Sequence record: KJ019086.1
Reading direction: 5' to 3' (one strand)
Length of the DNA stretch: 64,000 nt
Of this stretch, positions 1 through 19,769 are shown in pieces. The notes below the pieces were generated by a model. The model did no database searches. It saw only the letters and a program-made list of their open reading frames with translations, and had not been told where the DNA came from. A program made the position numbers and the translations under genes. The stretch's first letter is position 1; every line of letters begins with the position of its first letter.

Positions 1-286
1 AGCGTTACTATTCAATCATCACATTAAGAAGGGTGGGTTGGAGAACAAGTATTCTCTCATCAATAGTGGTGAGAAGATCAAGTTCTGCTACCTCAAGATT
101 CCTAATCTAATTGGTGAGAATGTTATCTCATTCATCTCCGACTTTCCTAGGGAACTTAAGTTGGAGAAGTATGTTGATTATGATACCCAATTCAATAAAG
201 CATTCCTAGATCCACTCAAGATCATCTTGGATGCTATTGGTTGGAACTGTGAGAAGCAGATGTCCTTGGAGTCATTTTTCACCTGA
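1..286 (+). CDS. gp43: DNA polymerase gp43 (family B), C-terminal end; 5' truncated by window
   Basis: Frame is open from position 2 (ALLFNHHIKK...). Contains GEKIKFCYLKIPN, YVDYDTQFNKAFLDPL and SLESFF, typical of the T4-like polymerase C-terminus; lies upstream of uvsX. Confidence 0.92.
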   Translation, partial: ALLFNHHIKKGGLENKYSLINSGEKIKFCYLKIPNLIGENVISFISDFPRELKLEKYVDYDTQFNKAFLDPLKIILDAIGWNCEKQMSLESFFT

Positions 287-3730: not shown

Positions 3731-4135
3731 ATGAGCGTAGATTTTTCTAAGTACGGTGAGTTTGTAGACACAGTAACTAGTGCCCCCTCCAAGGGAACTG
3801 GTGAGATGATCGCAGTACTCAAGGACCTTAAGGTTCGTGGAGCACAACCTGAGAGACTACTCACTGGTGCAGTTGGTATCTGTGCTGAGGGTGGTGAGTT
3901 TATGGAAGTCGTCAAGAAGATGGTATTCCAAGGCAAACCTTATGACCACGATAACATCTGGCATATGAAGCGTGAGTTGGGTGATATTATGTTCTATGTA
4001 CAAACAGCGTGTATCGCTCTAGGTACCTCTGTTGATGAGATTGTAGAGATGAATGTGGAGAAACTAGAAGCACGATATCCAGGTGGTCAATTTAGTGTAG
4101 AGAATAGTGAGAACCGAGTAGAGGGTGACTTATGA
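3731..4135 (+). CDS. mazG: MazG-family nucleoside triphosphate pyrophosphohydrolase
   Basis: EGGEFMEVVKK...ELGDIMFY...NVEKLEARYP motifs. Confidence 0.93.
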   Translation: MSVDFSKYGEFVDTVTSAPSKGTGEMIAVLKDLKVRGAQPERLLTGAVGICAEGGEFMEVVKKMVFQGKPYDHDNIWHMKRELGDIMFYVQTACIALGTSVDEIVEMNVEKLEARYPGGQFSVENSENRVEGDL

Positions 4136-4254
4136 TTGCATCTGATACACATAATGAACCCACTGAGTTAATCAGACAAATCAATGAGTCAGTGGAACGT
4201 GCTAGAATGAAGGAACAAGACGATCAACTAAACTACGACACAGGAGGTAAATGA
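4132..4254 (+). CDS. small hypothetical protein (40 aa)
   Basis: ATGA overlaps at both ends. Confidence 0.55.
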   Translation: MIASDTHNEPTELIRQINESVERARMKEQDDQLNYDTGGK

Positions 4255-4559
4255 TGGACAAACCAATTACAGTTGAGGAATACCAAGAGGCTGGTAAAGA
4301 GTTCTGGCCAAAGTATTGGTATGTTGCTAAAGAACTTGGTGAAAACGCTAAGACTGAAGATGTCCTACATGTTATGGAGTCTCTTGCTGGTGTTGTTATG
4401 GTCAACAGAAGCAATGAAAAGAAAGAATACTCTGGTATGATTGGGTTCAATAAGTCCCTAGAAGACAACCCATTGGCTTCTGCTACATACCACGGACAAC
4501 CAGTTACAGAGTGTCCCCCAGGGACTATCTACTGTAACGGTGAATGTTGTGACCTATGA
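4251..4559 (+). CDS. conserved cyanophage hypothetical protein
   Basis: 102-aa ORF with GGAGG RBS; EFWPKYWYVAKELGE. Confidence 0.8.
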   Translation: MMDKPITVEEYQEAGKEFWPKYWYVAKELGENAKTEDVLHVMESLAGVVMVNRSNEKKEYSGMIGFNKSLEDNPLASATYHGQPVTECPPGTIYCNGECCDL

Positions 4560-4567
4560 GGTAAATT

Positions 4568-4702
4568 ATGGCTAAAAGAACCTATACTACAAAGTCTGGA
4601 GATGTGTTTGAGTGGGAAGAGACCCCTGAAACTACTGCAGCACTCAAAGCTCTCCACAGACAAGTGGCAGAGACAAAACAGAAGCTTGACAGCACCAAGT
4701 GA
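4568..4702 (+). CDS. small hypothetical protein (44 aa, MAKRTYTTKSG...)
   Basis: Translated by hand; GAGGT RBS. Confidence 0.6.
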   Translation: MAKRTYTTKSGDVFEWEETPETTAALKALHRQVAETKQKLDSTK

Positions 4703-4714
4703 GTCTGTTATAAT
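4686..4714 (+). promoter_or_regulatory. sigma70 promoter TTGACA-N17-TATAAT driving the tRNA/ncRNA cluster
   Basis: Perfect consensus at 4686-4691 and 4709-4714. Confidence 0.85.
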
Positions 4715-4794
4715 ATGAGAGTTGGGAAGGAAACCCCCCAACTGCGGTGACCCCCTTGGTAGTTCAGGGTTAGCGGCGATAGGAACTACCACAA

Positions 4795-4868
4795 GGGTTA
4801 ATAGCTCAGCTGGACAGAGCAACGCTCTTCTAAAGCGTCGGTCGTTGGTTCGAATCCAACTTAACCCG
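4795..4868 (+). tRNA. trnR: tRNA-Arg (TCT)
   Basis: Acceptor GGGTTAA/TTAACCC, anticodon arm ACGCT-CT TCT AA-AGCGT, T-loop GTTCGAATC; no encoded CCA. Confidence 0.95.
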
Positions 4869-4890
4869 TTGGGGTCTAATTAACCCCATA

Positions 4891-5075
4891 GGATGTGACA
4901 GAATGAACCGTTTGGTTAATACCGGTCATTGTATAGTAGGGAAGGCTGTGGTGGCCGCCAGAAAGACTAGGAGACTAGAGTTCTGAGAACCCATACCAGG
5001 GTCCCGAAAGTTCAGAGGTATTACTATTCTTAGTATGACCCCTCTGTTGGAGGTAAAAAGATAATCCTCCCATCC
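4891..5075 (+). ncRNA. multi-stem structured RNA between the tRNAs; candidate manA RNA motif
   Basis: Closing GGATG/CATCC; internal stems AATGA/TCATT, CAGAA/TTCTG, CTAG-GAGA-CTAG, CAGAGG/CCTCTG and GGAGG/CCTCC; no ORF. tRNA adjacency fits the described manA motif of cyanophages. Confidence 0.55.
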
Positions 5076-5081
5076 ACCCAA

Positions 5082-5153
5082 TCCACAATAGCTCAGCGGT
5101 AGAGTCGGCGACTGTTAATCGCCTTGTCCCTGGTTCGAATCCAGGTTGTGGAG
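5082..5153 (+). tRNA. trnN: tRNA-Asn (GTT)
   Basis: Acceptor TCCACAA/TTGTGGA, anticodon arm GGCGA-CT GTT AA-TCGCC, T-loop GTTCGAATC. Confidence 0.95.
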
Positions 5154-5171
5154 TTCTTTATTATCTTTGAT

Positions 5172-5888
5172 ATGGATGTATCCAATCCTGATAACTGGTA
5201 TATTGGTAGATTTTGTGAATCTAACTTCCTAGATCAAACAGCACTCTCCTCAGTGAGGTCATGGATTGATACTCAATCATGGGTAGATGGAGTTTTAACT
5301 TTGGACTACTCTAAAGATAAGGATCCATATCAACTGAAAAGAAATCAGGCAACGAGAAATATAATCCCACCCAGACTATTTTGGCCACATGTTGATAAGA
5401 ACGAAAAGTTCGCTCGGTTCACCTGTCCCCGATCAAGCACCGATCCAAACTGCACAAAAACATCTAAGGGTGAATACTACAAACCACACTTTGATGATGT
5501 AGTTAATGGGCACTTCTCAACTACGATCTTTATCAGTGATCCTGATGAATATGATGGTGGTGAGTTAGTTCTGTATATTGACGGGAAGGAAGTATTCTTC
5601 AAACCAAAAGCAGGTGAAGGTGTAACTTATGAGACTGGTATTGGTCATAGAGTCAATACAGTCACAAGGGGTGAGAGATTGGCATTTGTATTCTGGACAG
5701 ATTGTCGATGGGATGATATTGATGATTATCGTGATTGGCGTTATTATAACTATATGAAAGACTACCTAATGACAACTCCTTATGTTGATACCTTATATGA
5801 GTTTTGTAACGAACCCCATACTATATTCAAAGGGAAATCATATGATATTATGAGAAAGGTTATGAGGAAAGTTATTCCTAATGGTTGA
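5172..5888 (+). CDS. 2OG-Fe(II) oxygenase (PKHD/YbiX-like)
   Basis: YYKPHFD, DEYDGGELV, GHRV and RLAFV motifs. Start moved to ATG 5172 because 5124 lies inside tRNA-Asn. Confidence 0.85.
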   Translation: MDVSNPDNWYIGRFCESNFLDQTALSSVRSWIDTQSWVDGVLTLDYSKDKDPYQLKRNQATRNIIPPRLFWPHVDKNEKFARFTCPRSSTDPNCTKTSKGEYYKPHFDDVVNGHFSTTIFISDPDEYDGGELVLYIDGKEVFFKPKAGEGVTYETGIGHRVNTVTRGERLAFVFWTDCRWDDIDDYRDWRYYNYMKDYLMTTPYVDTLYEFCNEPHTIFKGKSYDIMRKVMRKVIPNG

Positions 5889-6414
5889 ATCATTTTACGG
5901 AGAAATACTCAACTCGGATGCTACTGGGCATCTGTATTCGTATGCCCAAAGTATTCAAGACTGGCAAACCATAAACCAAGACTACATGGGTAAGAAATAC
6001 CAGTCTGTTATGGCTCATAAAGTCCCTAGGGGAAATGAGATTGAGAAGTATGTTGTCAGAACTTTTCTCACATTCAATAAGTTATATTTCAACTACGATT
6101 TAGTAGGAACATTTGAAACACAGATTCTGAAATACAATGTGCATGATGGGTATGATTGGCACTGTGACTATGGTGTGAGTGAGAATCCCAATGCAGTTAG
6201 GAAACTGAGTATGATTATTCAACTCAGTGATATGTGGGACTACAACGGTGCAAATGTATTCCTAAGGGACTGGCACAACCGAGAACACATCCTAAGTAAG
6301 GAGTCTGGGTATGTTACCGTATTTGACTCTAGGTCCCCTCACAGGGTCTCTCCTCTAGCTATCGGAGAACGATACTCACTGGTAGCCTGGGCTCACGGTC
6401 CAGAGTGGAGATAA
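5881..6414 (+). CDS. 2OG-Fe(II) oxygenase
   Basis: YDWHCD, RKLSMIIQLS, HRV and RYSLVAW motifs. Confidence 0.9.
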   Translation: MVESFYGEILNSDATGHLYSYAQSIQDWQTINQDYMGKKYQSVMAHKVPRGNEIEKYVVRTFLTFNKLYFNYDLVGTFETQILKYNVHDGYDWHCDYGVSENPNAVRKLSMIIQLSDMWDYNGANVFLRDWHNREHILSKESGYVTVFDSRSPHRVSPLAIGERYSLVAWAHGPEWR

Positions 6415-6439
6415 ATAAAATACAAAGAAATGGAAACAT

Positions 6440-6754
6440 ATGCTTTCTACACAATATCGTCTTCGCCTTGAGGCTATCTGCCGAAAGATTGCGAATAGTG
6501 AATCTGTGGATTTGAGTGACATGATCTGGGCAGACAAATTGGCAAAGAGCCATACTACTGCTAGAGACTGGTTACAGCAGGCAAGAAGACAATCAGCCCA
6601 TCAAATTGAAGAAGGTACCATAGATGATTTTATGAATAGGATGGGTTTAGGTGATCCCGATCCGTCCAATCATAAGAAGGGATTTGATAGTGCCGATGAT
6701 ATTAAGGACTGGTTTCAACAGGATAAGCCCAAAGACTGGAGACAAAGAGACTAA
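6440..6754 (+). CDS. conserved cyanophage hypothetical protein
   Basis: MLSTQYRLRLEAIC...QQDKPKDWRQRD, a recurrent cyanophage ORF type. Confidence 0.8.
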   Translation: MLSTQYRLRLEAICRKIANSESVDLSDMIWADKLAKSHTTARDWLQQARRQSAHQIEEGTIDDFMNRMGLGDPDPSNHKKGFDSADDIKDWFQQDKPKDWRQRD

Positions 6755-6756
6755 CT

Positions 6757-6936
6757 ATGGCTAATAAAAACGACAAAGGCAATCACCCAAGAGAAGAGGG
6801 TTGGTTCACCGAAAAGTTGAAGAGAAGACTCAGGAATGATCTCATACATCCTGAACATCTAGTTCCCATTCTTATTGAAGAGAATGAGGCACTTAGAGCA
6901 GAGATTGCAACACTAAAAGCAATGCATAAATGGTAA
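6757..6936 (+). CDS. small hypothetical protein (59 aa)
   Basis: Translated by hand; tightly packed between neighbours. Confidence 0.65.
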   Translation: MANKNDKGNHPREEGWFTEKLKRRLRNDLIHPEHLVPILIEENEALRAEIATLKAMHKW

Positions 6937-6937
6937 A

Positions 6938-8239
6938 ATGGCAGCATTAAGTTCCACTTCCCCAGGACAACTAGGTAAGTATGTCATCCCCACAGTCCAG
7001 AAACTAAATGATGCGATGAAACGCAGAACTAGTCTTGGTAGGGGGAGTGGTAAGTCTTATACCATTAAGAATACCCCTGCGAATGTGGCAGCTATCAAGG
7101 AGTTCTCTCGTATTGGTAGCTCTCCCAAGTCACAGAAAGAAGCACTTGCTATTAGTCTGCAGACCACTGATACTAAAGTTCCTACTATTACTATCGGTAG
7201 TATTGATAAACCTAATATCAAATACAACCTTGGGGATATGTCTGAGGCTGTAGTTGGTGCTGCTATTGCCGCCAGGTTTATCTACAAGAATAGAAGTATT
7301 ACGGCTTCAAATGTTTATGGTGTCCTATATGGAATGCCACCATCATCTAACTACCCAGGGAAGAAGGGAAAATATACAGAGAAGACATTCCAGTCAATCA
7401 ATGAAAATAAGAAGGTCACAGATCAGGTTAAGGTGTATATCTCCCTAGCTGAGGTTAATATGGCTGCTGTGATGGATAGATCCAATAAGGATCTTATTCT
7501 TCCTTATGTTCGTTCTGCAGTTAGATATGCTAATAGTACCACTGTCAAGAAGTGGTCCAAACTACTTTATGAGAACAATAGATCAGATAAGATTGATGTA
7601 ATGTCCGATGGTCTTGGAGGACAAACCACAACTAAAGTGGATGTATATGTAAAAGTTAATGATGAGAAAGTAAATATTAATGTGTCACTGAAGGCTGGTG
7701 ATGTCAAACAGTTTGGTCAGGTCTCTGGTATTGAGTTTGAGAAACAAACTAAACTATGGGAAACCTCCTTTGGTTTTGGTAGTGAGATTAAGAGTCTAGA
7801 GTCAAAGTATAACCAGTTGATCTCAGATAAATCAACAGTCCCACAGGCTGTAACTATGGTATATCAGGAGGTGGCTAACCTTTTCAATCAAGGTATTAGG
7901 AGGGGTGACGCTGGTATGATAAGGAAATTTGCCAACTCCATTAAGTATTTCGCTACACTAAATGAAGATAATGTAACCCTACTACAGGTGGGTAATGACG
8001 CAGCAAAGCTCTATTCGTTTGATGATATATACCAAGGAATAGAAAACATGCAACTGAACGCTACCATTACTATGGGTAAGAGTGGTCTCCCAACCTTACT
8101 AATAAACGAGACTGCTAGTGGGCAACCTCTTATTCAGTATCGAGTGAAGCAGGAGTTCAAACCCGATGGGTCTCCATACATCAGAAACTATGTGGAGAAG
8201 CAGACTGTTCTAGGAAAACTTATTGGTGAAAACCTCTAG
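6938..8239 (+). CDS. hypothetical protein with a possible PD-(D/E)xK nuclease core
   Basis: GDMSEA...KVDVYV...NVSLKAG pattern (E...D...SxK); immediately upstream of dam. Confidence 0.5.
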   Translation: MAALSSTSPGQLGKYVIPTVQKLNDAMKRRTSLGRGSGKSYTIKNTPANVAAIKEFSRIGSSPKSQKEALAISLQTTDTKVPTITIGSIDKPNIKYNLGDMSEAVVGAAIAARFIYKNRSITASNVYGVLYGMPPSSNYPGKKGKYTEKTFQSINENKKVTDQVKVYISLAEVNMAAVMDRSNKDLILPYVRSAVRYANSTTVKKWSKLLYENNRSDKIDVMSDGLGGQTTTKVDVYVKVNDEKVNINVSLKAGDVKQFGQVSGIEFEKQTKLWETSFGFGSEIKSLESKYNQLISDKSTVPQAVTMVYQEVANLFNQGIRRGDAGMIRKFANSIKYFATLNEDNVTLLQVGNDAAKLYSFDDIYQGIENMQLNATITMGKSGLPTLLINETASGQPLIQYRVKQEFKPDGSPYIRNYVEKQTVLGKLIGENL

Positions 8240-8274
8240 GTGTGTTATAATACCATTGTAGAGATTTCTATTTT

Positions 8275-9174
8275 ATGAAGGAACGCAGAAAGTATCCAAC
8301 CGTATTGAGGTATCCAGGCGGTAAGTCTAGGATTATCTACTATTTGTTTAGGGAAAATATGATCCCTAAGAATGTCAAGGAATACCGTGAGGGTTTCCTA
8401 GGTGGGGGTTCTTGTGCTCTTGCGTTCTCTGTGATGTACCCAAACACCCCAGTTTGGGTCAATGATCTTTACTACAATCTGTATATCTTCTGGACACAAC
8501 TCCAGAAGAATCCAGATCCACTTATCAATCGTCTCCTAGAACTAAAGGACGAAGCCTGTGATGCATCAGGTACAGAAGAACTAGAGAAAAAGCATAGAAA
8601 ACTCTACACAGATATGCGTGATCTCATTAACACCTCTAGTGATCACCTTGATATTGCAACCTCCTTCTACATTCTAAACCGATCTAGTTTCGGTGGATTC
8701 ACTGAACAAAACAAGAATGCCTTCATCCGAGACTCATACAAGAATACTATTTTCTCTCAGAGTAAAATCCGTAAGTTGGCTAATATCTCTGAGATTATCC
8801 AACCCTGGAGAATTACCAATACACACTACAAGGAACTAATGAGAGCTCCTGGTGATGATGTATTTGTGTTCCTAGACCCTCCATATCTAATCAAGGATAT
8901 GTTGTATGGTAAGGACAAGGAGATGCACACTGGGTTCTCTCATGAAGAGTTTGTGAGTGAGTGTAAAGGTTCTACACATGACTGGATGATTACCTACAAT
9001 GAACATGAATGGTTGAGATCCCAGTTCGCTGACTATCATATGGAGTCTTTCGAGTTCCGTTATAGTCTCGCCCACAGGGAAGAGAATGGCAACAAGAAAG
9101 AAGAACTCCTCATAATGAACTATGAGATTCCTCGTGATATCCCAAACCCACTAGAGGTAGTTTTGTATGGATGA
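8275..9174 (+). CDS. dam: Dam-family (D12 class) DNA adenine methyltransferase
   Basis: LRYPGGKS, EGFLGGGS (motif I) and FLDPPY (motif IV). Confidence 0.92.
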   Translation: MKERRKYPTVLRYPGGKSRIIYYLFRENMIPKNVKEYREGFLGGGSCALAFSVMYPNTPVWVNDLYYNLYIFWTQLQKNPDPLINRLLELKDEACDASGTEELEKKHRKLYTDMRDLINTSSDHLDIATSFYILNRSSFGGFTEQNKNAFIRDSYKNTIFSQSKIRKLANISEIIQPWRITNTHYKELMRAPGDDVFVFLDPPYLIKDMLYGKDKEMHTGFSHEEFVSECKGSTHDWMITYNEHEWLRSQFADYHMESFEFRYSLAHREENGNKKEELLIMNYEIPRDIPNPLEVVLYG

Positions 9175-9622
9175 TCTAGAGCTAGAGTATCATCTTTATC
9201 TGGATGGAAACCCTATTCAGACACTGAAGGATGACGCTAGTACAATGACTTTAGCCAAGAAGAGGGTTATTGGTCCTTACATTCGTAGAGCTGAATCTTT
9301 TATTAAAATATCAGAACCATTTAGGGAACTACTTCGTCTTGATGATGGTAAGGATAAACTTCTAGATGCAATAGGTGTTGTCTGGGCACACTACTTTGAA
9401 CATAAGATTAACAAGAAGTATATGGTTATCCCTAAGGATGCATCTCTTGATTTTATGGAATACTTTGGTACTATGGTACAGAAGGATAAGTTTCCAGATG
9501 ATAAATATATTAAGAAAGCTCAGCGTATCATTCTCTCTCACGAAAAGAGTATTGATGCTTTCATTAAGGCTTTTCATAGTATCCGTTTAGCCAACGACAA
9601 ATATCTCTCCCTGAAGAAATGA
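9167..9622 (+). CDS. hypothetical protein
   Basis: 151-aa ORF overlapping both neighbours. Confidence 0.75.
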   Translation: MDDLELEYHLYLDGNPIQTLKDDASTMTLAKKRVIGPYIRRAESFIKISEPFRELLRLDDGKDKLLDAIGVVWAHYFEHKINKKYMVIPKDASLDFMEYFGTMVQKDKFPDDKYIKKAQRIILSHEKSIDAFIKAFHSIRLANDKYLSLKK

Positions 9623-12480
9623 TCACACCGAAGTCCCTACTATCATTCCTATCTGAAGCCGCTGATTCTGAGGCTGCACAACAGGCTAAGGAGATGGGTT
9701 TAACCTCTGCCGGTTATGGTAACTGGCGAGATAAACAGGGCAATGTTGTTGCCAAAACTGTAGATGGTCAGTTGGTGATGATTGACGCCAAGGCAGATCC
9801 TACGGCTAGACCAGCGGCACCTGAGGAGGAAATGCCACCTGAAGAGGAGGAGGAGCCCCAGTTTGTAGAACCAGATCCAGATATGGTTGAGACAGTAGCT
9901 AAGGGTCTTTCTGGTGGTAGATATAATATTGCATCAGCACAAAGGAAGAAAGCGTTACTGGCTTCTGCTAGACAGATATTAATCAATAAACAGATCCAAG
10001 ACGCTCAGATGCAAGCCGATGCTGAAGCTCAGGCAGCGGCACAAAACCCACCAGAACCTACTCCAGAGGAGTTGGCACAACAACAGGCGGATATGGAACT
10101 ACAGCAACAGAATGCTGTAATGGATACCGAACTGAAGGCACAGAGTGTTGAGAACGGGAAACTGGACCTTCAGATGAAGAAGGACCAGATGAAGCAACAG
10201 AAAGAGGCAGAGAAAGAAGCCAAGGCTATGGATAAGTTAGCCAAGAAGGCTCAGAGTCAGAAAGATCCTGGATCTATGGCTCAGAGGATGGCTAATGATG
10301 CTGAGTATGAGGCACAAGTTTCGAAGGATGGGGAAGAAGCTCTACTTGATGTTCAGACTGAACCTGATGTGGCTCCAGCGCCTAAACCAAAATCAAAGGC
10401 GTTAGATAAGGCTAACAAGAAAGCCAAAAAGATAGATACCACAGATTCTTCTGATAAAGAACTAAGATCTGCTGCTGATGATGTTATTCGTAGTCTACTC
10501 AGTGGAAACACTAAGAGGGCAGATAAAACATATAAAGAAATTAAGAGAAAGTCATTCAGTCAACTAAGAAATCAGACAGATAAACCACAGAAGAGGGAAG
10601 ATCCTAAAGTAACAGAGGAGAGATTTGCCTCTCTAGTTGATAATATCGATCCTAACAATCTAGGACCTGGTATGAGATATGATCCCATCAGAGGAAAGGC
10701 TTCCGCTAAGACGGCGGTTCTAAGTGGATTTGATTCACCAGAAGATTTCCCAGAGTTTCAATCCAAAGAACTAAAAGGTCTCACCTCACTTATCAGAGAC
10801 TATATTGAGAAAGAGAACACTATGTGGTTCAACTCCGAGGTAGATAGGAAGAGTGGTGAAGGTGATTTCTCCCTAGATGGTTCTGAATACTTTAGTGATG
10901 AGGAAGCCAAGTCAGTGAATACAGATCTCAAGAACTCTGCTGATATTTCACAGTTCTTAGATTGGGGTCTAACCTCAACCAAGGCTGGGAAGTTTGGTGC
11001 GCAGAAACTAGCCTATCCACAGGAAAGAATGGCTCTTATTGATAACTATGATAGTGAGGAATCTACATCACCAGAAGAACTTGTGGCTAAATCAACCATC
11101 AATAAGGTTTCAGATAATGAGGTGGATAAATCTTGGAGTACTCTTTCTGGTTCTAAAAAGAAGTGGTTTGAGACTGCTGGTCACGGTAGGGGGGGATCAC
11201 ACCCATACTGGAAGGAGAACCCAGAAGAGTGGGGCAAAGCTATGTTGAAGAGGTATCTAGAACAGGGTGGTAGGGATGGATACCTCCACTTTGAGGGAGC
11301 CCCACCACTACAGTTCAAGGATATGGCAGCTGATCACGTAATCTCCTACGCAGATAACACTGATTATTGGAAGAAGAAAGCACTAGAAGAAGATCCAAAC
11401 CTACAGGGATCTGAACTAGCAGAGAGGGCAAAACGGATCTCTGATGACCCATCTAACATTATCTTCACCCGATGGGGATTCAATCAACAGCAGAAAGATA
11501 AGAATCCTCTATGGGATGTTAGACAGAGATATGAGAAAGAATCTAAACAGGGTGCCTCGAAGCAAGATAATAAGGCACAGGAAAGTCAGAATAAAAAGAG
11601 GAGAGGTGAACTTCGTAATGAGTTGTATTGGAAACCACTTCAGGAAGCAGTTGGTGAGATAACAAAGAGGGACAAGAGTGGAAACATGAAGTTAACTCGA
11701 GAGGGTTATGATGAACTTCGTAATTATGCGAAAACTGGGTATCAGATGTTAGACAAATCTGGATATGGTAGAGACCTATCCAAATCTGCTGGCTTCTACC
11801 AGAGAAACGCTATGACAGACGCGTATCGTGCTCTAATTGGATCTATCAAACCTGGTATTCAGATCTTTGGTAGAGACAGACTCCGTGGTGGTGACGGACA
11901 ACAGGCGAGTGACTGGCAGGGTATTGACGGAAAACACTCCAATACTGCGGCAGATGGAAACATAGATCAGGGATCAATGGTTGATCCAGGCACTGATTAT
12001 GTGAAGCACGCTATGGCACAACTACACCTATTCGGTGGTGATAAAGGTAGACTTCTCGCCAAAGAATCTATGGATAGAATCAAGAGAGCGGGTGATGCTC
12101 TAGTTGTTGGTGATATTGGAACTGGAATGTTCACGAAATATATCGCTGATAACCTATCTGCTATGAAGCAACTAGCAGACGAGGGTGGTTTGGAATTGGA
12201 TTATGATGATGAATCTGGAGATCACCAGAGAATCCTTAACGCAAACATCATAAAGAATGTTCTAAAGGAGAAGAACCCTTCTGGTTATCGTTTGGAAGAA
12301 GATATCTTCAATGAAGATAGACCAGCGATGAGAGGAAACATAGCGAAGAAGAGGAATGATGAAGAGTTCACTAGACTGAATGAGGATCTACGTGCACTTA
12401 TGAATCCTGGTGAATGGGATGAGATCTATAAGGATACTGTTCTTGAACAGTTTGAATATGATGGGGAACTTATGTTATAA
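9619..12480 (+). CDS. 953-aa probable internal-head protein with a central HNH-like nuclease motif
   Basis: N-terminus SFLSEA plus a module shared with the cytidyltransferase; long Q/E/K/P-rich linker; YLEQGG...ADHVISY...DDPSN...FNQQQKD. Confidence 0.55.
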   Translation: MITPKSLLSFLSEAADSEAAQQAKEMGLTSAGYGNWRDKQGNVVAKTVDGQLVMIDAKADPTARPAAPEEEMPPEEEEEPQFVEPDPDMVETVAKGLSGGRYNIASAQRKKALLASARQILINKQIQDAQMQADAEAQAAAQNPPEPTPEELAQQQADMELQQQNAVMDTELKAQSVENGKLDLQMKKDQMKQQKEAEKEAKAMDKLAKKAQSQKDPGSMAQRMANDAEYEAQVSKDGEEALLDVQTEPDVAPAPKPKSKALDKANKKAKKIDTTDSSDKELRSAADDVIRSLLSGNTKRADKTYKEIKRKSFSQLRNQTDKPQKREDPKVTEERFASLVDNIDPNNLGPGMRYDPIRGKASAKTAVLSGFDSPEDFPEFQSKELKGLTSLIRDYIEKENTMWFNSEVDRKSGEGDFSLDGSEYFSDEEAKSVNTDLKNSADISQFLDWGLTSTKAGKFGAQKLAYPQERMALIDNYDSEESTSPEELVAKSTINKVSDNEVDKSWSTLSGSKKKWFETAGHGRGGSHPYWKENPEEWGKAMLKRYLEQGGRDGYLHFEGAPPLQFKDMAADHVISYADNTDYWKKKALEEDPNLQGSELAERAKRISDDPSNIIFTRWGFNQQQKDKNPLWDVRQRYEKESKQGASKQDNKAQESQNKKRRGELRNELYWKPLQEAVGEITKRDKSGNMKLTREGYDELRNYAKTGYQMLDKSGYGRDLSKSAGFYQRNAMTDAYRALIGSIKPGIQIFGRDRLRGGDGQQASDWQGIDGKHSNTAADGNIDQGSMVDPGTDYVKHAMAQLHLFGGDKGRLLAKESMDRIKRAGDALVVGDIGTGMFTKYIADNLSAMKQLADEGGLELDYDDESGDHQRILNANIIKNVLKEKNPSGYRLEEDIFNEDRPAMRGNIAKKRNDEEFTRLNEDLRALMNPGEWDEIYKDTVLEQFEYDGELML

Positions 12481-12506
12481 TATAGAGAGTCTCTCTGTAT
12501 TATAGT

Positions 12507-13280
12507 ATGATTGATCTGATCCACGAAGAGTGTATCGCTGGTATGAATAAACTCCCAGAGGGTAGTGTGGATGTGATTGTTACTTCCCCTCCCTACAATC
12601 TGGGTATCGATTATTCCACATACTCTGATAAGAAGGGTAGGGTAGAGTATTTGTCATGGATGCGGGATGTATTTCTTGCCGCCAGGAGAGTTCTAAAGGA
12701 TCAGGGACATCTTTTTCTAAATGTTGGTTATTCTAATATTGATCCTTGGGTTAACATGGATGTTGCACAGACACTCCGTGAAGATTGGGTGTTGCAGAAT
12801 AATATTTGTTGGGTTAAATCTATTCACGTTGGGGATAAAACAACAGGACACTTCAAACCAATCAACTCCAAGAGGTTTATTAACCCAACATGGGAGTCAC
12901 TATTTCACTTCACTAAAGACGGGAATGTGGAGATTGATAAACTAGGTGTAGGTGTTCCCTTTGAGGTGAAGTCTAATATCAAGAGGTGTGGTCACGCACA
13001 GGACCTACGGGACAGGGGAAACAGTTGGTTTGTTCCCTATCCACACATCGCTAGGAAGCACCAGAAAGCAAACCATCCCGCTATCTTTCCTCCTGATCTG
13101 GTGAAGTTTTGTCTAAAGACTTCTGGTATTGATAAAGGTGTTCTGATGGATCCTTTTGTTGGAACTGGAACTTCAGCGTGGGTAGCACAAGAGATGGAAT
13201 GGGACTTTATAGGTTATGATATTGATGAAGAGTATTTGGATTTTGCTAGATCGAGGTTAATGAATGTCACAGCGTTTTGA
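12507..13280 (+). CDS. beta-class DNA amino-methyltransferase (probably N4-cytosine)
   Basis: VTSPPY near the N-terminus, HPAIFP, and DPFVGTGTS near the C-terminus. Confidence 0.9.
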   Translation: MIDLIHEECIAGMNKLPEGSVDVIVTSPPYNLGIDYSTYSDKKGRVEYLSWMRDVFLAARRVLKDQGHLFLNVGYSNIDPWVNMDVAQTLREDWVLQNNICWVKSIHVGDKTTGHFKPINSKRFINPTWESLFHFTKDGNVEIDKLGVGVPFEVKSNIKRCGHAQDLRDRGNSWFVPYPHIARKHQKANHPAIFPPDLVKFCLKTSGIDKGVLMDPFVGTGTSAWVAQEMEWDFIGYDIDEEYLDFARSRLMNVTAF

Positions 13281-14010
13281 TGTTGTTATTGGCAACCCCC
13301 CATACCAGGATGGTAGTGGGGATAAAGAGAAGGGGTTATCTGGATCAAAGAAGAACCTATACTCTGCCTTTATCACCAAGAGTATTGAACTACTAAAACC
13401 CAACGGATATCTATCATATATCTGTCCACCTGGATACATCAAAACAACTTCTATTGAGAAACCCTCACCACTATTCAAACTAATCCAACAGTATAATCTT
13501 ATCTCTGTTGACTTCAATTGTAAGAAATACTTTCCAACAGTCTCCCTACCAGTCATCACCCGTTTCCTTCTACAGAACACAAAGGAATATAAGGGAACTG
13601 ATTTTGGTAGTGAGGTCATTGATATTTCTCTTATGGATTATATACCTATCCATTGTTCCAAAGATACACTGAAACGGTTAGAAGAGGTAGTATCCAAGAA
13701 GAAAACCCTAAACTTTAAGAGAGATGATAGTTTTGGGGTAGTGAATAGGTGTATCAAAGACAAAACTAACTTTGTCGTTATAGCACAAGTATCACCATCC
13801 AAACTAGAAGTTTGTGTGAATGATGTATTGATAAATAAAAAGGGAAACAGGAAACCAGTTCATGTTATGGTATGTGATAATACTAGGCATGCGGAACGTA
13901 TTGGTGATATAATGAGAAGCGAGAATGCCACATTTTTAAATACCACCCTACGATATGGTGATGGAAACGTCTATCCTGGAATCATTAACTACCTAAACTA
14001 TGAAATTTGA
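13264..14010 (+). CDS. gamma-class/Eco57I-like N6-adenine MTase, catalytic plus TRD half (no motif I)
   Basis: Starts FDVVIGNPPY; Y.AFI.K...LLK..GYLSYI.P; in-frame stop directly upstream. Confidence 0.75.
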   Translation: MSQRFDVVIGNPPYQDGSGDKEKGLSGSKKNLYSAFITKSIELLKPNGYLSYICPPGYIKTTSIEKPSPLFKLIQQYNLISVDFNCKKYFPTVSLPVITRFLLQNTKEYKGTDFGSEVIDISLMDYIPIHCSKDTLKRLEEVVSKKKTLNFKRDDSFGVVNRCIKDKTNFVVIAQVSPSKLEVCVNDVLINKKGNRKPVHVMVCDNTRHAERIGDIMRSENATFLNTTLRYGDGNVYPGIINYLNYEI

Positions 14011-14028
14011 TGTTGTTATTGGCAACCC
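13276..14028 (+). repeat. 23-nt identical direct repeat TTTGATGTTGTTATTGGCAACCC at 13276-13298 and 14006-14028
   Basis: Read directly; similarity continues through CCATA(C/T)CAG. Confidence 0.9.
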
Positions 14029-14905
14029 TCCATATCAGAATCCTGATGGTGTAAAGAACAAGAAGATCTGGTTATCTTTCTTTGATCTTGGTGTCTCTCT
14101 CCTAAAGGAGGGTGGTACTATGTGTTATATCACGCCCACCACTCACTTCTGGAGTTTGGGTAGAAAGTGGCAAACTGGTGTGTCTGCTGATATTCTACTG
14201 AAACAGAACAACCTTCGTAGTGTAGATTTCACAACATCCAAACACTTCCCACAGGTTGGTGACTACATCTGCAACTATGTTCTACGCAAAGAACCTCCCA
14301 GTGGTATGGTAGATGTTATTGAGAAAGATGGGACAGAGGTTCTACGCCCACATGATGATGTCTATGATTGTGATGAGGAGAGACAAAAGGCAAAGTTCTT
14401 CTCTGCTATGAGAGAACTACGAGAGAAGTATGGGAAGTATCATATTCCCCACGACACAAGAGATAAGAGTCATTATAGTCAGACACAGGAGGGTGTGTAT
14501 CAGCATCCTACTTATATTTCGGCAGCAAAACAGATATGGTATGCTGACAGTCCTACACTAGGAACTGATACATTAAAGATTATTATGAATATGTCTTCCT
14601 ACTTCTGGAATATCAATGATACTCAGAAGTATATGAGGATTGATTCAGGTCCTGGTGTTGGTTTATTGGGAAGAATGTTGGCAATTGATAGTGTGGAAGA
14701 TGGTGAGAAGATAGTTGAGTATCTAACTTCACCACTAGTGAAGTTCTACATTGACTGTATGAAGAGAACGAGTCCATGGAATCATGGGGTCTACCAGTTG
14801 CCAAAGTGTCACCATATGACAGAGGATGAGATTCTGGAAGAAATAGGTTATAATAAGGATGAGTTTTATAGCATGTATCCAGATAGATTAAATGTCAAAG
14901 TCTAA
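14000..14905 (+). CDS. second gamma-class MTase catalytic plus TRD half (no motif I)
   Basis: Starts MKFDVVIGNPPY; LLKEGG.MCYITP; C-terminal SPLVKF typical of Eco57I-like TRD ends. Confidence 0.75.
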   Translation: MKFDVVIGNPPYQNPDGVKNKKIWLSFFDLGVSLLKEGGTMCYITPTTHFWSLGRKWQTGVSADILLKQNNLRSVDFTTSKHFPQVGDYICNYVLRKEPPSGMVDVIEKDGTEVLRPHDDVYDCDEERQKAKFFSAMRELREKYGKYHIPHDTRDKSHYSQTQEGVYQHPTYISAAKQIWYADSPTLGTDTLKIIMNMSSYFWNINDTQKYMRIDSGPGVGLLGRMLAIDSVEDGEKIVEYLTSPLVKFYIDCMKRTSPWNHGVYQLPKCHHMTEDEILEEIGYNKDEFYSMYPDRLNVKV

Positions 14906-15395
14906 ACAGAGTTGGTATAAAACATGGACTAGTATGAAGTGGAGGTGTGATAATAACATTGACAAATATAAAGACATTACATATTGTGACGAATGGAAAG
15001 ACTCCGATCAGTTCCACGCTGATATGGGGGACAGACCAGAGGGGAAGACACTGGATAGGATAGATGGGGCGATGATATACTCACCAGAAACATGTAGATG
15101 GGCGACCCCACAGGAACAATCAGAGAACAGACCTACATTCAACTATAACTATAACGGAATGTCTCTGATGGAAAATTGTCGACAGAGGTCACTTCATTAC
15201 CCCACAATTCTGGGTAGAATACAAAGAGGATCAACAATTAGTGAAGCGCTGGAAACCCCAGTGGTAGATTATAGAATAATGTATGAAGGGAAAACATTAG
15301 CGGAAGTGTGTAGGGAACGGGGGTTGACATATAGGAAAATATATACTAGGATCAGACGAGGTATGGAAATCAAGACAGCAATTGAGAAGGGTTGA
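14892..15395 (+). CDS. HNH homing endonuclease
   Basis: W.SMKWRC...F.ADMGDRPEGKTLDRID...Y...CRWAT..EQ..NR, plus two C-terminal HTH-like repeats. Confidence 0.85.
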   Translation: MSKSKQSWYKTWTSMKWRCDNNIDKYKDITYCDEWKDSDQFHADMGDRPEGKTLDRIDGAMIYSPETCRWATPQEQSENRPTFNYNYNGMSLMENCRQRSLHYPTILGRIQRGSTISEALETPVVDYRIMYEGKTLAEVCRERGLTYRKIYTRIRRGMEIKTAIEKG

Positions 15396-15420
15396 CAAGG
15401 GGTCCCAGGTGTGTTATACT
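15392..15420 (+). promoter_or_regulatory. sigma70 promoter TTGACA-N17-TATACT for the dam2-sigma pair
   Basis: 15392-15397 and 15415-15420, with an extended TGTG. Confidence 0.8.
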
Positions 15421-15445
15421 ATCTGGGTAGGTTAGGTTATTCTGT

Positions 15446-16327
15446 ATGGTGAAACCCCTGTTTAAGTGGACTGGTGGAAAGGGGCGACTATTCCAGAAGT
15501 ATCAAGATCTAAACTTCTTCCCAGAGGCAGACAGGTTCGACACATTTGTTGACCTGTTTTTTGGTGCTGGGTCAGTCACCCTTTGGGTTGCGGAGAAGTA
15601 TCCAGATAAGAAACTCATTATTAATGATAAGAACACGGAACTTATGGGGTTATATACCCAAATACGTGATAACTGGGGTGAGTTTAGTGAGCACTATAAG
15701 AGAGTGTATAACGTATTCCTAGACACCCCAATAGAGAAAAGAAAGGCACTCTATAACTGTTATAAGAAGAGATATGCATGGAACTATAAGTGGTTGTCAG
15801 AAGCAGAGATTGCGGCAAACCTCTTGGTTATGATGAAGATTAACTTCAATGGTATTTGGTTAGCGTATAAGATGTATGGTCGTAGGTATTCTACGGCACC
15901 AGGGAAGATTGATTATAAAGAAAGTATCTTTGGTATGGAGAATGTGGAACAGTTCCGTCAAGTCCTACTACGGGCAACACTCTACAATAGATCCTTTGAG
16001 GATGTTCCTATTCCTGATAACTCCTGGGTATTTGCTGATCCACCATACAGAGACACCAGAGATATGTATTCCGATACATTCACCGATGAACTTCAGTCTA
16101 AACTGGCAAAGTTCATAGTTTCTACAGACGGACTATACTGTGAGTCTAATAAAGAAACTGGTGATGGTTTCTGGGGAGAACACTTCCCTATGGAGAACAT
16201 CCACTTCACAGATCACAAATACACTTGTGGTTATGGGGGATCCATTAACCCAGTCACTGAAGTTCTTATAAAGAACTATGGGAATAATATCCCACAACCA
16301 ACTACCCTTGATTCCTTTTTTAACTGA
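15446..16327 (+). CDS. second Dam-family DNA adenine methyltransferase
   Basis: KPLFKWTGGK, DLFFGAGSV and FADPPY. Confidence 0.88.
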   Translation: MVKPLFKWTGGKGRLFQKYQDLNFFPEADRFDTFVDLFFGAGSVTLWVAEKYPDKKLIINDKNTELMGLYTQIRDNWGEFSEHYKRVYNVFLDTPIEKRKALYNCYKKRYAWNYKWLSEAEIAANLLVMMKINFNGIWLAYKMYGRRYSTAPGKIDYKESIFGMENVEQFRQVLLRATLYNRSFEDVPIPDNSWVFADPPYRDTRDMYSDTFTDELQSKLAKFIVSTDGLYCESNKETGDGFWGEHFPMENIHFTDHKYTCGYGGSINPVTEVLIKNYGNNIPQPTTLDSFFN

Positions 16328-16329: not shown

Positions 16330-17022
16330 ATGCAAAAGAAAAACCGTATCTCCCACGAAGAAGAAATTAAACTATGTCGTCAGGCACAACTACAAGATCA
16401 TACATCCAAGTATGCTATGACTAAAATGGTTAGTGCTAATATTGGGTTGGTTGAGAAACTCGCTAACAAACTCTACATCAAGAATGATCAATACTCTTTC
16501 GATGATCTATACCAGGAGGGTGTATTTGGTCTTATCAGAGGTGTGAATAAGTTTGATCCTAGTGTTGGATGTAGGTTCTCCACCTATTCCTACTACTGGA
16601 TTTATAGTTATATTATGAGGTATTGTGAGAATAACCTAGGCAAGATCCGTATTCCCACTCACCTCCGTGAGAAAATGAGGAAACAGAAAGATAATAAGGT
16701 AGAGTTGGATAAACTAAAATCAAAGGTTCCTTCAGTAGTATCATTGAATACAATAGTGGGTGAATCACTATCCTTGGATAATGTAGTTACATACACCGAG
16801 AATATCTCATTTGATGATGAGATGGAACATGTTTTGGTTGTTATGGGTGAGGTTTTAGATGAAAGAGAACACCAGGTTCTCTGTAGTAGGTTTGGTATTG
16901 GTGGTGAGAAACCACTATCCCAGAGAGAGTGTGCTAAACTACACAATGTTACCCATGGTGCTATCTATTTGATTGAGAAGAAATCAATCAAGAAAATCAA
17001 ACACTATATGGGGTATAAATAA
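16330..17022 (+). CDS. sigma70-family RNA polymerase sigma factor (RpoD/RpoS-like, divergent)
   Basis: Region 2 N.GLV...DDLYQEG..GLIRGVNKFDP..G.RFSTY..YWI; region 4 LDERE..VL..RFG. Confidence 0.88.
   Translation: MQKKNRISHEEEIKLCRQAQLQDHTSKYAMTKMVSANIGLVEKLANKLYIKNDQYSFDDLYQEGVFGLIRGVNKFDPSVGCRFSTYSYYWIYSYIMRYCENNLGKIRIPTHLREKMRKQKDNKVELDKLKSKVPSVVSLNTIVGESLSLDNVVTYTENISFDDEMEHVLVVMGEVLDEREHQVLCSRFGIGGEKPLSQRECAKLHNVTHGAIYLIEKKSIKKIKHYMGYK
17014..17021 (+). promoter_or_regulatory. T4 late promoter TATAAATA
   Basis: Exact motif 17 nt before the ATG at 17039. Confidence 0.75.
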
Positions 17023-17038: not shown

Positions 17039-18253
17039 ATGGCGATGAGATCGTTTCTAACATTCCTAACCGAAGCCCGTTCTCGTGCATCTAAAAGAGC
17101 CAAAGAGTTGGGACTCACTGGCAACGGTCACGGTGGATGGGAAGATAACGAAGGTAACCTAGTCGCTATGACTGTGAAGGGTGATCTGGAGTTTGTGAAG
17201 GGAAGAGAACCCAAAGAGGAAGAAGAACCCGATGAAAAGAATTCTGTTCCTGGAGAGGAGCCAACATCCAACAAAGCGCCTGGGGTAGATCCAGAGAACA
17301 CAGATACTCCAAGACAGAAAGAACCAGCGCCTGTTCCCAAAGATAAGGGTATTCTAACTGTTGCTTTCGGTAGGTTTAACCCTCCTACGATTGGACATGA
17401 GAAACTAATCAATACTGTAGCATCATATTCAGAGAACGGTGATTACATAATCATTCCCTCTAGGAGTGAGGATAAGAAGAAGAACCCTTTAGATATCGAC
17501 ACTAAAGTTAGTATCATGAGGCAGATGTATCCAACACACGCCGAGAAGATTGTTAACGATCCACATAACAGAACCATCTTTGATGTTATGCGTAAGGCGC
17601 ATAATGATGGTTACGCTGGTATTAGGATTGTTGGTGGTGGAGATAGAGTTAAGGAATATGAGAAGTTAGCCAACGCATATAACGGATCTACCTATCAGTT
17701 TGATGAAATTGATGTAGTAAACGCTGGTGACAGGGATCCAGATGCAGAAGGTGCAGAGGGTATGTCTGCTTCCAAGATGAGAAAAGCAGCAGCTGATAAC
17801 GACTTTGCTTCTTTCAGAAAGGGAATGCCAAAGACTCTCAGTAACGATCAGATGGTTTCTATCTACACTCAGGTCCAGAAGTCTATGGGTGTAACACCTA
17901 AGGAAGCTGTAATTGAAAACTGGAAAGTTGCTCCTAGACTGTATCCACAGGAACTGAGAGAGGCTTATATCCAAAACGAAATCTATAATATTGGTGATAC
18001 TGTCAGTCATGACACCACTGGTATGGTAGGTAAGATCGTAAGAAAGGGAACTAACCACTTGATCTGCGTAACAGAAAGTGAAGAGATGTTCAAGACCTGG
18101 ACACAGGATGTTAGTCCTGCGGATCTAAAACCACAACCAGCAATCTCTACTCCAAAGGAGAGGGAAGTTGGAACAGATTCCCTTAGATCTTTCCTTCAAA
18201 GGATCACTCCAGGAGAGAAAGAGCAATCCTTTATAAATAAACATAAGAAATAA
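17039..18253 (+). CDS. cytidyltransferase-like (nucleotidyltransferase) protein
   Basis: VAFGRFNPPTIGHEKL (HxGH-type), GGGDRV and MSASKMR; N-terminal FLTFLTEA. Start set downstream of the late promoter. Confidence 0.85.
   Translation: MAMRSFLTFLTEARSRASKRAKELGLTGNGHGGWEDNEGNLVAMTVKGDLEFVKGREPKEEEEPDEKNSVPGEEPTSNKAPGVDPENTDTPRQKEPAPVPKDKGILTVAFGRFNPPTIGHEKLINTVASYSENGDYIIIPSRSEDKKKNPLDIDTKVSIMRQMYPTHAEKIVNDPHNRTIFDVMRKAHNDGYAGIRIVGGGDRVKEYEKLANAYNGSTYQFDEIDVVNAGDRDPDAEGAEGMSASKMRKAAADNDFASFRKGMPKTLSNDQMVSIYTQVQKSMGVTPKEAVIENWKVAPRLYPQELREAYIQNEIYNIGDTVSHDTTGMVGKIVRKGTNHLICVTESEEMFKTWTQDVSPADLKPQPAISTPKEREVGTDSLRSFLQRITPGEKEQSFINKHKK
18232..18239 (+). promoter_or_regulatory. T4 late promoter TATAAATA
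   Basis: Exact motif upstream of ORF 18273. Confidence 0.7.
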
Positions 18254-18272
18254 GACAGTTCCTTTTTAGAAG

Positions 18273-19769
18273 ATGGATTTCAACGTAACCGAAGCTGTCG
18301 AGCTAATCGTATTGTTAGCCGAGACAGAACAGCTAACACTACAAGATGCTCTACAGGAGTTCCTATCAGAGACCGAGTTGGACTCTGAAACGGCATCCCA
18401 TCTAAAGGGTGCCCTCTTTGAGAAATATTCACTCAGAGAGATGGCTACTGATGCCGTAACAAACGCTATGATGAAGGTGTTTGTTAGTCGTCCAGTAGTA
18501 GAAGAGGAAGTGGAGACTCCTGATGGTAATCTCTACTTTGTAGAGGTTGAATTAGAGGAGGAAGTTCTAGAAGGTTATCTAACCCTAGAAGAAATCCAGA
18601 ATATGAGAGTGGATGCTGATGTTCTATCCGTTAAGTTAGTTGATGAAGGTGTTCGTGACACTGACGCCGAGAAAGGAACAGAGGAAAGAAAGAAACGCCT
18701 TGAGAAGAAGCGTGGAATGAAGTTGGATGACCATCCTCAGTATCTGGAAACAGATATGAAGAAGCGTCAGGAGAATAACGAGAAGGCTCGTAAGGATATG
18801 GATAAAGTGAAGGGTCAGAAGAATCCTCACTTCGAAGAGTATGATATTTCTGAAGGTCGCAAAGAAGGTGAGTCTTCTAAAGATTACGCCGATAGAATGA
18901 CTAAGAAGTATTCTGGTGGTAAGTCTAAGTCCTATGATCCCATGAAGGATAAGAACTTCGACCATGACAAGGCAGAAAGAACCCGTGGTTCTATGGAAGA
19001 AGGTCTAGATGCCGTAGGTGGCGAAGACGCTGACATTAATAACGATAATAAGGTTGATAAGACTGATAAGTATCTACACAATCGTCGTAAGGCTATCGGC
19101 AAGGCGATGAAGAAAGAGTCAGCTTGGGCTGAGTATCTAAATCGTAGAGGAATCTCTGAGGAAGTATTCTCTGAAGGTGACCTAATCGACGCAGGTCGTA
19201 AGAATGAGGGAGAAAGAAGGGGAAAAAAGATTACCGGGGAGGGTGTTGATAACTCCTCCTCTGTGAAGTTGATGCCCCGTATCGCTGAAGCCGCTATCAT
19301 CACTGAGAAGTCAGAGAGTAAGTCACAACAGCGTCTCTTTGGTATGGTAAGAGCAGCTCAGAAGGGTGAGAAACCCGCCTCTGGTAAGGTTGCTGAACTA
19401 GCTTCTAAGGTTGGTAAGAAAGACGTTCTAGACTTCGCTAAGACAAAACACAAGGGTTTGAAAGAGAACTGTTGTGATAAGTGTGGCACTCCTGATTGTA
19501 CTTGTGATGAGAAGCCCAAGTCTAAGAAAAAGAAAGCTAAACTAGATGAAGCAGGGATGCCTATTCTAGAGTATTCTAGAAACAACGCTGAAGGTCCTAC
19601 ACCTGAAATGATTGATCCCCCAAAGGATGAAGAAGGTAAGAAGGGTGTAAAGAACCCTAAAGGTAAGGCTAAGAGACCTGGTGCAGGTGACAGAAGACCT
19701 AACGACGGTGGTTCCGAACTACCATTCGATATGGGAACCGTACCCGGTGGCGGCGGTTGTGGTTGCTAA
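18273..19769 (+). CDS. highly charged late protein, probable virion/internal head protein
   Basis: Late promoter; E/K-rich with many xxE sites; EDADINNDNKVDKTDKYL and KSESKSQQRLFGMV segments typical of cyanophage internal proteins. Confidence 0.65.
   Translation: MDFNVTEAVELIVLLAETEQLTLQDALQEFLSETELDSETASHLKGALFEKYSLREMATDAVTNAMMKVFVSRPVVEEEVETPDGNLYFVEVELEEEVLEGYLTLEEIQNMRVDADVLSVKLVDEGVRDTDAEKGTEERKKRLEKKRGMKLDDHPQYLETDMKKRQENNEKARKDMDKVKGQKNPHFEEYDISEGRKEGESSKDYADRMTKKYSGGKSKSYDPMKDKNFDHDKAERTRGSMEEGLDAVGGEDADINNDNKVDKTDKYLHNRRKAIGKAMKKESAWAEYLNRRGISEEVFSEGDLIDAGRKNEGERRGKKITGEGVDNSSSVKLMPRIAEAAIITEKSESKSQQRLFGMVRAAQKGEKPASGKVAELASKVGKKDVLDFAKTKHKGLKENCCDKCGTPDCTCDEKPKSKKKKAKLDEAGMPILEYSRNNAEGPTPEMIDPPKDEEGKKGVKNPKGKAKRPGAGDRRPNDGGSELPFDMGTVPGGGGCGC

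Follow-up and report, generated by a model that had tools for sequence, protein, structure and literature searches.

Injected "first-strike" proteins have been well studied in phage T4, but hardly in the abundant marine cyanophages. T4 Alt is a large enzyme packaged via a capsid-targeting sequence, and Dar of phage P1 (DarB and its partners) comprises large head-packaged proteins that are delivered with the DNA and act in the first moments of infection. Large head-packaged, DNA-delivered proteins are also reported to be linked to modification and restriction conflicts in a study of "polyvalent proteins". To our knowledge, no HNH nuclease payload is known among the natural T4 internal proteins (IPs), and a literature search yielded no paper tying capsid-targeting sequences to cyanophages. 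Here, we describe an open reading frame (ORF) of 953 aa (9619-12480) in a 64,000-nucleotide (nt) stretch of sequence record KJ019086.1, hereafter the window, which probably encodes a head-internal, injected protein following the same logic as the T4 IPs and Alt and carrying a Cas9-type HNH nuclease as its payload. The sequence of the region is that of isolate Syn7803US17 of Synechococcus phage ACG-2014f, at 100% identity (KJ019086, 133619-136480); the phage is a T4-like cyanomyovirus (Kyanoviridae, genus Atlauavirus). Coordinates are those of the window unless another record is named, and all features between 8275 and 18253 lie on the + strand.

T4 IPI, IPII, IPIII and Alt carry a short propeptide with hydrophobic residues at positions -6 and -3, Leu or Ile at -2 and Glu at the cut; their genes lie outside the head module, and diverse payloads follow the conserved targeting sequence (PMC3012670, PMC9026906). 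In the T4 record, the propeptide of IPII and IPIII comprises 10 residues, with Y4, F7, I8 and E10 followed by A11, of which residues 4 and 7 serve targeting and residues 8 and 10 serve processing (PMC9026906). The 953-aa protein, which starts MITPKSLLSFLSEA, follows this T4-type rule at its targeting as well as its processing positions (L/I-x-E): L7, F10, L11 and E13/A14 (the slash marks the cleavage site) reproduce the IPII/IPIII spacing, moved by three residues, and equally the spacing of Alt. Residues 1-13 (9619-9657) are thus a predicted capsid-targeting propeptide ending at the prohead-protease site L11-S12-E13/A14. The string FLSE/A is identical to the propeptide site of the phage's own capsid protein (RAFLSE/AP, corresponding to SFLTE65/A66 of T4 gp23), so that the 953-aa ORF reproduces the capsid maturation site of this phage; ACG-2014f also encodes a gp21 protease. 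Sites of the form F[LI][ST]E[AGS] are rare, with 5 occurrences in 84,111 residues when the + strand ORFs of the whole phage are considered: the capsid-protein propeptide, the 953-aa ORF, a 404-aa cytidylyltransferase, the N-terminus of a 113-aa basic protein, and the interior of a giant baseplate protein.

The propeptide is followed by a conserved module (residues 14-58; 9658-9792; AKEMGL..GYGNW.D..GNVVAKTV.G.LV) that is common to other packaged enzymes. Within the window, residues 4-56 match the N-terminus of the 404-aa cytidylyltransferase-like protein (17039-18253; BLASTP E 3e-13; Pfam CTP_transf_like, E 2.2e-6) and no other ORF; the leader of this protein reads F6..F9-L10-T-E12/A13 and continues into the same module. 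The GenBank label of the 953-aa ORF, "cytitidyltransferase", traces to this N-terminus only. The leader module is also found in a 687-aa protein and a cytidylyltransferase of phage S-B05, in S-SM1_190, and in gp12 and gp14 of phage S-CREM2. Cytidylyltransferase homologues have repeatedly been detected in purified virions: that of S-SM1 with 25 spectral counts (Sullivan et al. 2010, Table S8), and those of S-SZBM1 (PMC9146016) and S-CREM2 (PMC10665884) likewise by mass spectrometry. All three carry the leader, as F4, F7, L8, E10/A11 in S-SM1_190, F3, F6, I7, E9/A10 in S-SZBM1_140, and F4, F7, L8, E10/A11 in S-CREM2 gp154.

The 953-aa protein has its only recognisable domain (residues 529-640; 11203-11538) behind a variable, charged low-complexity linker (residues ~211-528; 10251-11202; no family match). 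The original prediction, made from the sequence alone, had proposed an HNH-like nuclease motif without Zn cysteines. The ORF, its first residues and the quoted strings are all present where they had been placed, the motif running from YLEQGG (residues 546-551, nt ~11254) to FNQQQKD (residues 621-627, nt ~11499), and the quoted motif holds no Cys pairs. Profile comparisons bear out a Cas9-type HNH (His-Me finger) domain. A sliced core profile of seven sequences matched the isolated HNH domain of SpCas9 at E 0.0049, and profile A6 (12 sequences with a mean identity of about 26%, residues 529-640, with five more distant cyanophage members added), searched against 177,635 Protein Data Bank (PDB) sequences, matched SpCas9 HNH (6o56_A) at E 3.5e-5. 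The latter search gave a single contiguous alignment, and 40 of its 44 matches were Cas9, with a GmrSD-like DUF262 protein as one other. D572-H573 (11332-11337), N613 (11455-11457) and N622 (11482-11484) align with the catalytic Asp-His and the two Asn of Cas9, which we take to be D839-H840, N854 and N863 of SpCas9. Together with a further catalytic candidate, D553 (11275-11277), residues H573, N613 and N622 are invariant across 13 homologues sharing 19-61% identity with the 953-aa protein; in the 12-sequence set, H573, N613 and N622 remain invariant, D553 is lost in one member, and the metal-ligand Asp stays Asp or Glu. Among single homologues, P0018 matches Pfam GmrSD_C (E 6.5e-4), an S-TIM5 protein weakly matches HNH_4 (E 0.15), and S-CREM2 gp12 was assigned to Cas9 by its authors using HHpred (92.4% probability; PMC10665884).

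The domain is collinear with Cas9 HNH (Pfam HNH_4) and with the C-terminal His-Me finger of GmrSD, all having the pattern ..YL.QGGRD.Y.., a D-H pair ending strand 1, an Asn in strand 2 and another ahead of the helix, and no Zn cysteines. An AlphaFold2 (AF2) model of residues 490-654 (predicted local distance difference test score, pLDDT, 82) places a strand at 569-573, a two-helix insert, a strand at 614-618, and a helix at 631-643. The insert, a helical stretch of ~40 residues between the strands (30-45 residues in the two alleles A and B described below), is unseen in Cas9. The similarity to Cas9 is limited to about 80 residues (SpCas9 812-883) and includes no RuvC, REC or protospacer-adjacent-motif (PAM)-interacting parts; no other Cas9 domain was matched in the 953-aa protein in family searches, and there is no CRISPR array. 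Given that nothing beyond these approximately 80 residues aligns, the 953-aa protein is not Cas9. It is also distinct from DarB, which acts in cis to protect DNA and contains methyltransferase and helicase domains, whereas the 953-aa protein combines one recognisable domain with a T4-type propeptide.

The leader and the HNH core come together in a second protein, S-CREM2 gp12, which has the same architecture of leader plus module, long linker, Cas9-type HNH core and helical C-terminus. The two proteins are alignable in the leader and the HNH core only: the leader and module match at BLASTP E 9e-7, and the HNH core at an hhalign probability of 95.5% (E 1.4e-8). S-CREM2 gp12 was found in CsCl-purified virions with 28 peptides (27.4% coverage), and was published as "CRISPR-Cas9 nuclease (virion protein)" and read as a host-derived Cas9, in a paper that mentions no targeting leader and no cleavage site, nor any variation among alleles (PMC10665884). 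The virion association of a homologue of the 953-aa protein is therefore already published, and it was misread there as Cas9; our comparison corrects this label. In gp12, the leader motif lies 15 residues further in (F19..F22-M23-A-E25/A), while a compact leader, F/L4..F7-L8-x-E10, is present on the virion-detected gp6 (a SAM, S-adenosylmethionine, hydrolase), gp13, gp14 (a kinase) and gp154 of the same phage. The neighbouring gp4, gp8, gp10 and gp11, which were undetected in virions, are without the leader. Thus, among the S-CREM2 genes examined, the rule Phi-x-x-F-[L/I/M]-x-E near the N-terminus separates virion-detected enzymes from undetected neighbours. The same rule explains the recurrent cytidylyltransferase in cyanophage virion proteomes, and it points to a putative natural packaged nuclease whose payload differs among near-identical phages from one host. 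The position and surroundings of gp12 differ from those of the 953-aa ORF, as gp12 adjoins an EcoRI-like ORF (authors' HHpred E 2e-61), has kinase and SAM hydrolase genes as neighbours, and lies three genes off a Dam gene. We also note that gp12 sits within a run of leader-bearing virion proteins (gp6, gp13, gp14; S-CREM2 3837-13331). Fold matches of the HNH model in BFVD were to other ACG-2014f alleles, S-CRM01 g51, and proteins of S-CBWM1 and S-TIM5. The latter two are annotated as virion structural, the S-TIM5 label being a GenBank annotation only, and the gene of the S-CBWM1 homologue immediately precedes that of the major head protein.

Comparison of ACG-2014f genomes revealed that the payload is not fixed. 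Only 5 of 45 ACG-2014f records carry the 953-aa allele; in the other 40 genomes, nt 1-632 of the ORF are kept at 96-97% nt identity, and the match then stops. Overall, about 45 near-identical genomes hold five alleles of this large ORF: A (953 aa), B (892 aa), C (961 aa), D (796 aa) and E (980 aa). All five keep a constant 5' block (residues 1-~210; 9619-10250), with residues 1-207/212 at 85-98% aa identity, and all five keep the HNH signature. Outside the leader block and the HNH core, the alleles are 25-42% identical or unalignable (in the linker, 25-40% or unalignable); alleles A and D align over ~170 residues past the leader, B and D not at all. The payload behind a constant leader is thus swapped as a cassette among near-identical phages, a pattern that would be expected for an effector in an arms race and that resembles the diverse payloads behind a conserved targeting sequence of the T-even internal proteins (PMC3012670). 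It is an arms-race locus open to direct test, in a virus-host pair of ecological importance. One further observation concerns allele C (L002:9001-11886), in which residues 454-528 faintly resemble the DNA mimic Ocr (E 0.031).

In the scheme that we favour, residues 1-13 would bind the scaffolding core of the prohead as a capsid-targeting propeptide, and a gp21-type prohead protease would then cut after Glu13, leaving an acidic protein of ~105 kDa within the head. The protein would exit with the DNA at infection, and in the host cell its HNH domain could cleave or nick, in a Mg2+-dependent manner, DNA encountered on entry; the host chromosome, defence elements or competing phage are candidate targets. 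A precedent from T4 is a nuclease that does no harm next to the packaged DNA as long as its cofactor is missing (PMC3012670). Compared to the T4 IPs and Alt, the 953-aa protein would be unusual in its size and acidity, its HNH payload, its extra conserved module of 45 residues and its cyanobacterial host, and its cleavage and injection are predicted. Several observations weigh against this scheme. The virion proteomes come from other phages, so that packaging of the ACG-2014f protein is deduced from its homologues and its leader. The protein has an isoelectric point (pI) of 5.1, in contrast to the basic T4 IPs; searches of the 953-aa protein in Pfam, as well as in PHROGs, NCBIfam and PADLOC, gave no useful match; the loop carrying N622 is modelled at low confidence by AF2; and Foldseek searches of the PDB with models of 464 and 165 residues returned no HNH structure and no match at E <3. 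Finally, no T4-type late promoter was found directly upstream of the ORF, the nearest ATAAATA lying 112 nt upstream within the preceding ORF, and the gene seems to share a transcript with Dam and two ORFs of unknown function.

The transcriptional context would fit a protein that is not packaged at all, but acts in the cytoplasm as an early or middle nuclease in host DNA breakdown or recombination, its N-terminal module serving a purpose other than packaging, for instance the binding of a common partner. Genes of replication and other early genes (uvsX, gp41, mazG, Dam, sigma factor) surround it, it seems to belong to an operon and has no late promoter of its own, and the shared module runs 45 residues past a targeting sequence of T4 size. 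This explanation leaves unaccounted for the presence of S-CREM2 gp12 and three cytidylyltransferase homologues in purified virions, the separation of detected from undetected S-CREM2 proteins by the leader, and the identity of the cleavage site with that of capsid-protein maturation; moreover, the T4 IP and alt genes likewise lie outside the head module. We therefore consider it very unlikely. The same packaging evidence is shared by a protein that is packaged but does not work as a nuclease, its HNH-like module merely binding DNA or metal, and which might be a pilot, DNA-end or ejection protein or might counter host defence as an inhibitor or decoy. The inhibitor role has a precedent in T4 IPI*, which inhibits GmrSD. 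Such a role would agree with the position of the S-CBWM1 homologue, which is encoded within the head module directly ahead of the major head protein, the helical insert of 40 residues in the HNH core, the Ocr-like stretch of allele C, and the combination of strain-level hypervariability with a conserved leader, as in the anti-restriction internal proteins of T-even phages (PMC3012670). Yet the whole catalytic set is kept across five diverged alleles, which argues for catalysis, as does the invariance of H573, N613 and N622 in 12 sequences with the metal-ligand Asp kept as Asp or Glu. Inactive HNH domains usually lack the His, which is kept here. Judged against this conservation, a packaged protein devoid of nuclease activity appears quite unlikely to us, and the sequence of the HNH core leads us to predict an active nuclease.

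The 953-aa ORF is surrounded by methyltransferase (MTase) genes, which the original prediction had placed directly beside it and cast as guards of phage DNA against the nuclease. A D12-class (Dam-like) N6-adenine MTase (8275-9174; PF02086, E 1e-24) indeed lies upstream and four MTase-like genes follow downstream, but two of these encode half enzymes. The downstream genes are a complete beta-class N6_N4 MTase with an SPPY motif (12507-13280; PF01555, E 5.7e-44), two ORFs of 248 aa (13264-14010; covering Eco57I profile positions 73-171 only) and 301 aa (14000-14905; Eco57I-like) that each represent the C-terminal half of a split gamma-class N6-adenine MTase, and a second D12-class MTase (15446-16327; PF02086, E 2.2e-20). 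Both D12 genes are constant in all haplotypes (L002, L004, L005 and L025 for the first). The arrangement is also less direct than proposed: an ORF of 151 aa (9167-9622; phrog_3417 of unknown function, no Pfam match, kept in all haplotypes) separates Dam from the 953-aa ORF, and a free-standing HNH homing endonuclease (14892-15395; phrog_3377, E 1.5e-49) sits within the array. As the stop of the 151-aa ORF overlaps the start of the 953-aa ORF, the two are probably co-translated.

Both half enzymes start at motif IV (FDVVIGNPPYQ), have frames closed upstream, and lack the AdoMet (S-adenosylmethionine)-binding half, the 248-aa ORF aligning to M.BseCI from residue 127; hence, they would not bind AdoMet on their own. 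Metagenomic relatives encode an ORF of 121-147 aa with motifs X and I beside the C-halves (L014:2493-3753, L017:3928-5182, L015:71-514). In ACG-2014f, the corresponding N-half lies about 100 kb away at KJ019086 36115-36519, where it is annotated as a hypothetical protein (TGEVFTP...FLDNSAGNGNFL, motifs X and I; 59% identity, E 1e-42 to 3e-45; Pfam N6_Mtase positions 20-90), and this one N-half may serve two C-halves of different specificities. The 151-aa ORF was considered as the missing N-half and rejected, as it has no motif I. The homing endonuclease fills the slot of the relatives' N-half ORF and has kept its first codons (MSKSKQ, compared to MSKSKE/MTKSKQ in the relatives); it is present in one of the five allele-A genomes and is private to this isolate.

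Across about 45 genomes, the allele of the large ORF and the downstream MTase set are completely linked. Between the large ORF and the constant D12 gene, allele A is followed by the N6_N4 MTase and the 248-aa and 301-aa ORFs, allele B by the 301-aa ORF only, allele C by an ORF of 169 aa, allele D by ORFs of 247 and 301 aa, and allele E by nothing. The N6_N4 MTase occurs only with allele A (5 genomes), and at the same position in the metagenomic relative L017, while the 301-aa ORF accompanies alleles A, B and D at 94-98% nt identity and is also present in metagenomic relatives. In haplotype C, the 169-aa ORF (L002:11861-12370) that replaces the variable MTases has no family match; its D...ELK string is faintly suggestive of a PD-(D/E)xK nuclease, and homology to the HNH homing endonuclease was rejected.

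The linkage invites the full model of the original prediction, in which the packaged HNH nuclease cuts unmethylated host or competitor DNA on entry while the N6_N4, split gamma-class and D12 MTases protect the phage genome by methylating its target sites, making the locus an injected weapon similar to a restriction-modification (R-M) system. As in Type II R-M, the nuclease gene adjoins DNA MTase genes and the locus is strain-variable, and a packaged nuclease needs some self-protection. Adjacency of nuclease and MTase is seen in haplotypes A, B and D and in L014, L015, L017 and S-TIM5; in divergent metagenomic relatives (23-39% identity), the gene is still adjoined by an Eco57I-like half-MTase, an N6_N4 MTase or a D12 MTase, the S-TIM5 homologue adjoins a DNA methylase gene, and S-CREM2 gp12 lies beside the EcoRI-like ORF and near Dam. 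Unlike Type II R-M, however, the nuclease is a predicted virion protein, and MTase content does not go one-to-one with the nuclease allele. Haplotypes C and E have the constant D12 gene but no allele-specific MTase, the homologues of S-B05 and S-CRM01 are without an adjacent MTase, and no DNA-recognition domain was identified in the 953-aa protein. Cognate specificity is unlikely, because the 301-aa half-MTase goes with three nuclease alleles that past the leader share ~26% identity or are largely unalignable. Genes that sit side by side in a recombination cassette are linked even without functional coupling, and the usual explanation for orphan MTases of phages is protection from host restriction. 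The evidence for the proposed guarding role is linkage, and it is mixed; we regard the full model as unlikely. By default, the neighbouring MTases would shield phage DNA from host restriction, and the array is best described as a variable anti-restriction island with a possible coupling to the nuclease. Quite improbable, in our estimation, is a still broader model, in which the leader loads an arsenal of HNH nuclease, cytidylyltransferase, kinase and SAM hydrolase, and the ACG-2014f HNH protein with its linked, partly split MTases forms an injected, methylation-discriminating system that would destroy unmodified host or rival DNA at entry, allele swaps setting incompatibility groups among co-occurring phages.

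About 500 residues of the 953-aa protein are low-complexity sequence, a PDB sequence search with the full protein gave only noise, and searches of IMG/VR yielded no conserved stretch with the alignment and no relatives with the protein. An exhaustive HMMER search with residues 490-953 against 1.84 billion representatives recovered 11 relatives only, none of them annotated. The allele-specific C-terminal region (residues 641-953; 11539-12480) is mostly helical in the AF2 model (pLDDT ~35-85) and gave no match in fold and family searches. The sole other [LI]-x-E-[AGS] site of the protein, L674-Q-E676/A677 (11638-11649), lies just past the HNH domain, and a protease cut there would part the HNH portion from the C-terminal region.

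At a larger scale, the 953-aa ORF is flanked by uvsX, gp41, mazG and 2-oxoglutarate (2OG)-oxygenase genes on one side, and by a sigma-70 gene, the "cytitidyltransferase" gene and gp186 on the other. A sigma-70-type promoter (TTGACA-17-TATACT; 15392-15420; 11/12 positions match, with a TG extension), kept in L004 and L005, precedes the second D12 MTase, the sigma factor gene that follows it, and the genes downstream. The cytidylyltransferase has a T4-type late promoter (TATAAATA; 17014-17021) 18 nt before its ATG, and the same element is found at gp186 (18232) and at the next ORF.

Two other proteins of this phage are candidate head proteins. The 113-aa basic protein (pI 8.8; Syn7803US17_99; KJ019086 52049-52390, outside the window) starts MTTTQTKTEFLTE/A and could be a small internal protein comparable to the T4 IPs. 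The 498-aa gp186 (promoter and gene, 18232-19769) has an EFLSE/T site at residues 29-33 and shares with S-SM1_191, a protein found in the virions of S-SM1, a motif of 38 residues (..D.VG.ED.D..ND..D..DKYL.NRRKAI.KAM; E 4e-5), and it may be another processed head protein; homology of gp186 to S-SZBM1_139 was considered and rejected. At the left edge of the window, the gp43 DNA polymerase (KJ019086 121270-124286, its end reaching window positions 1-286) is annotated as two ORFs with two small ORFs between them.

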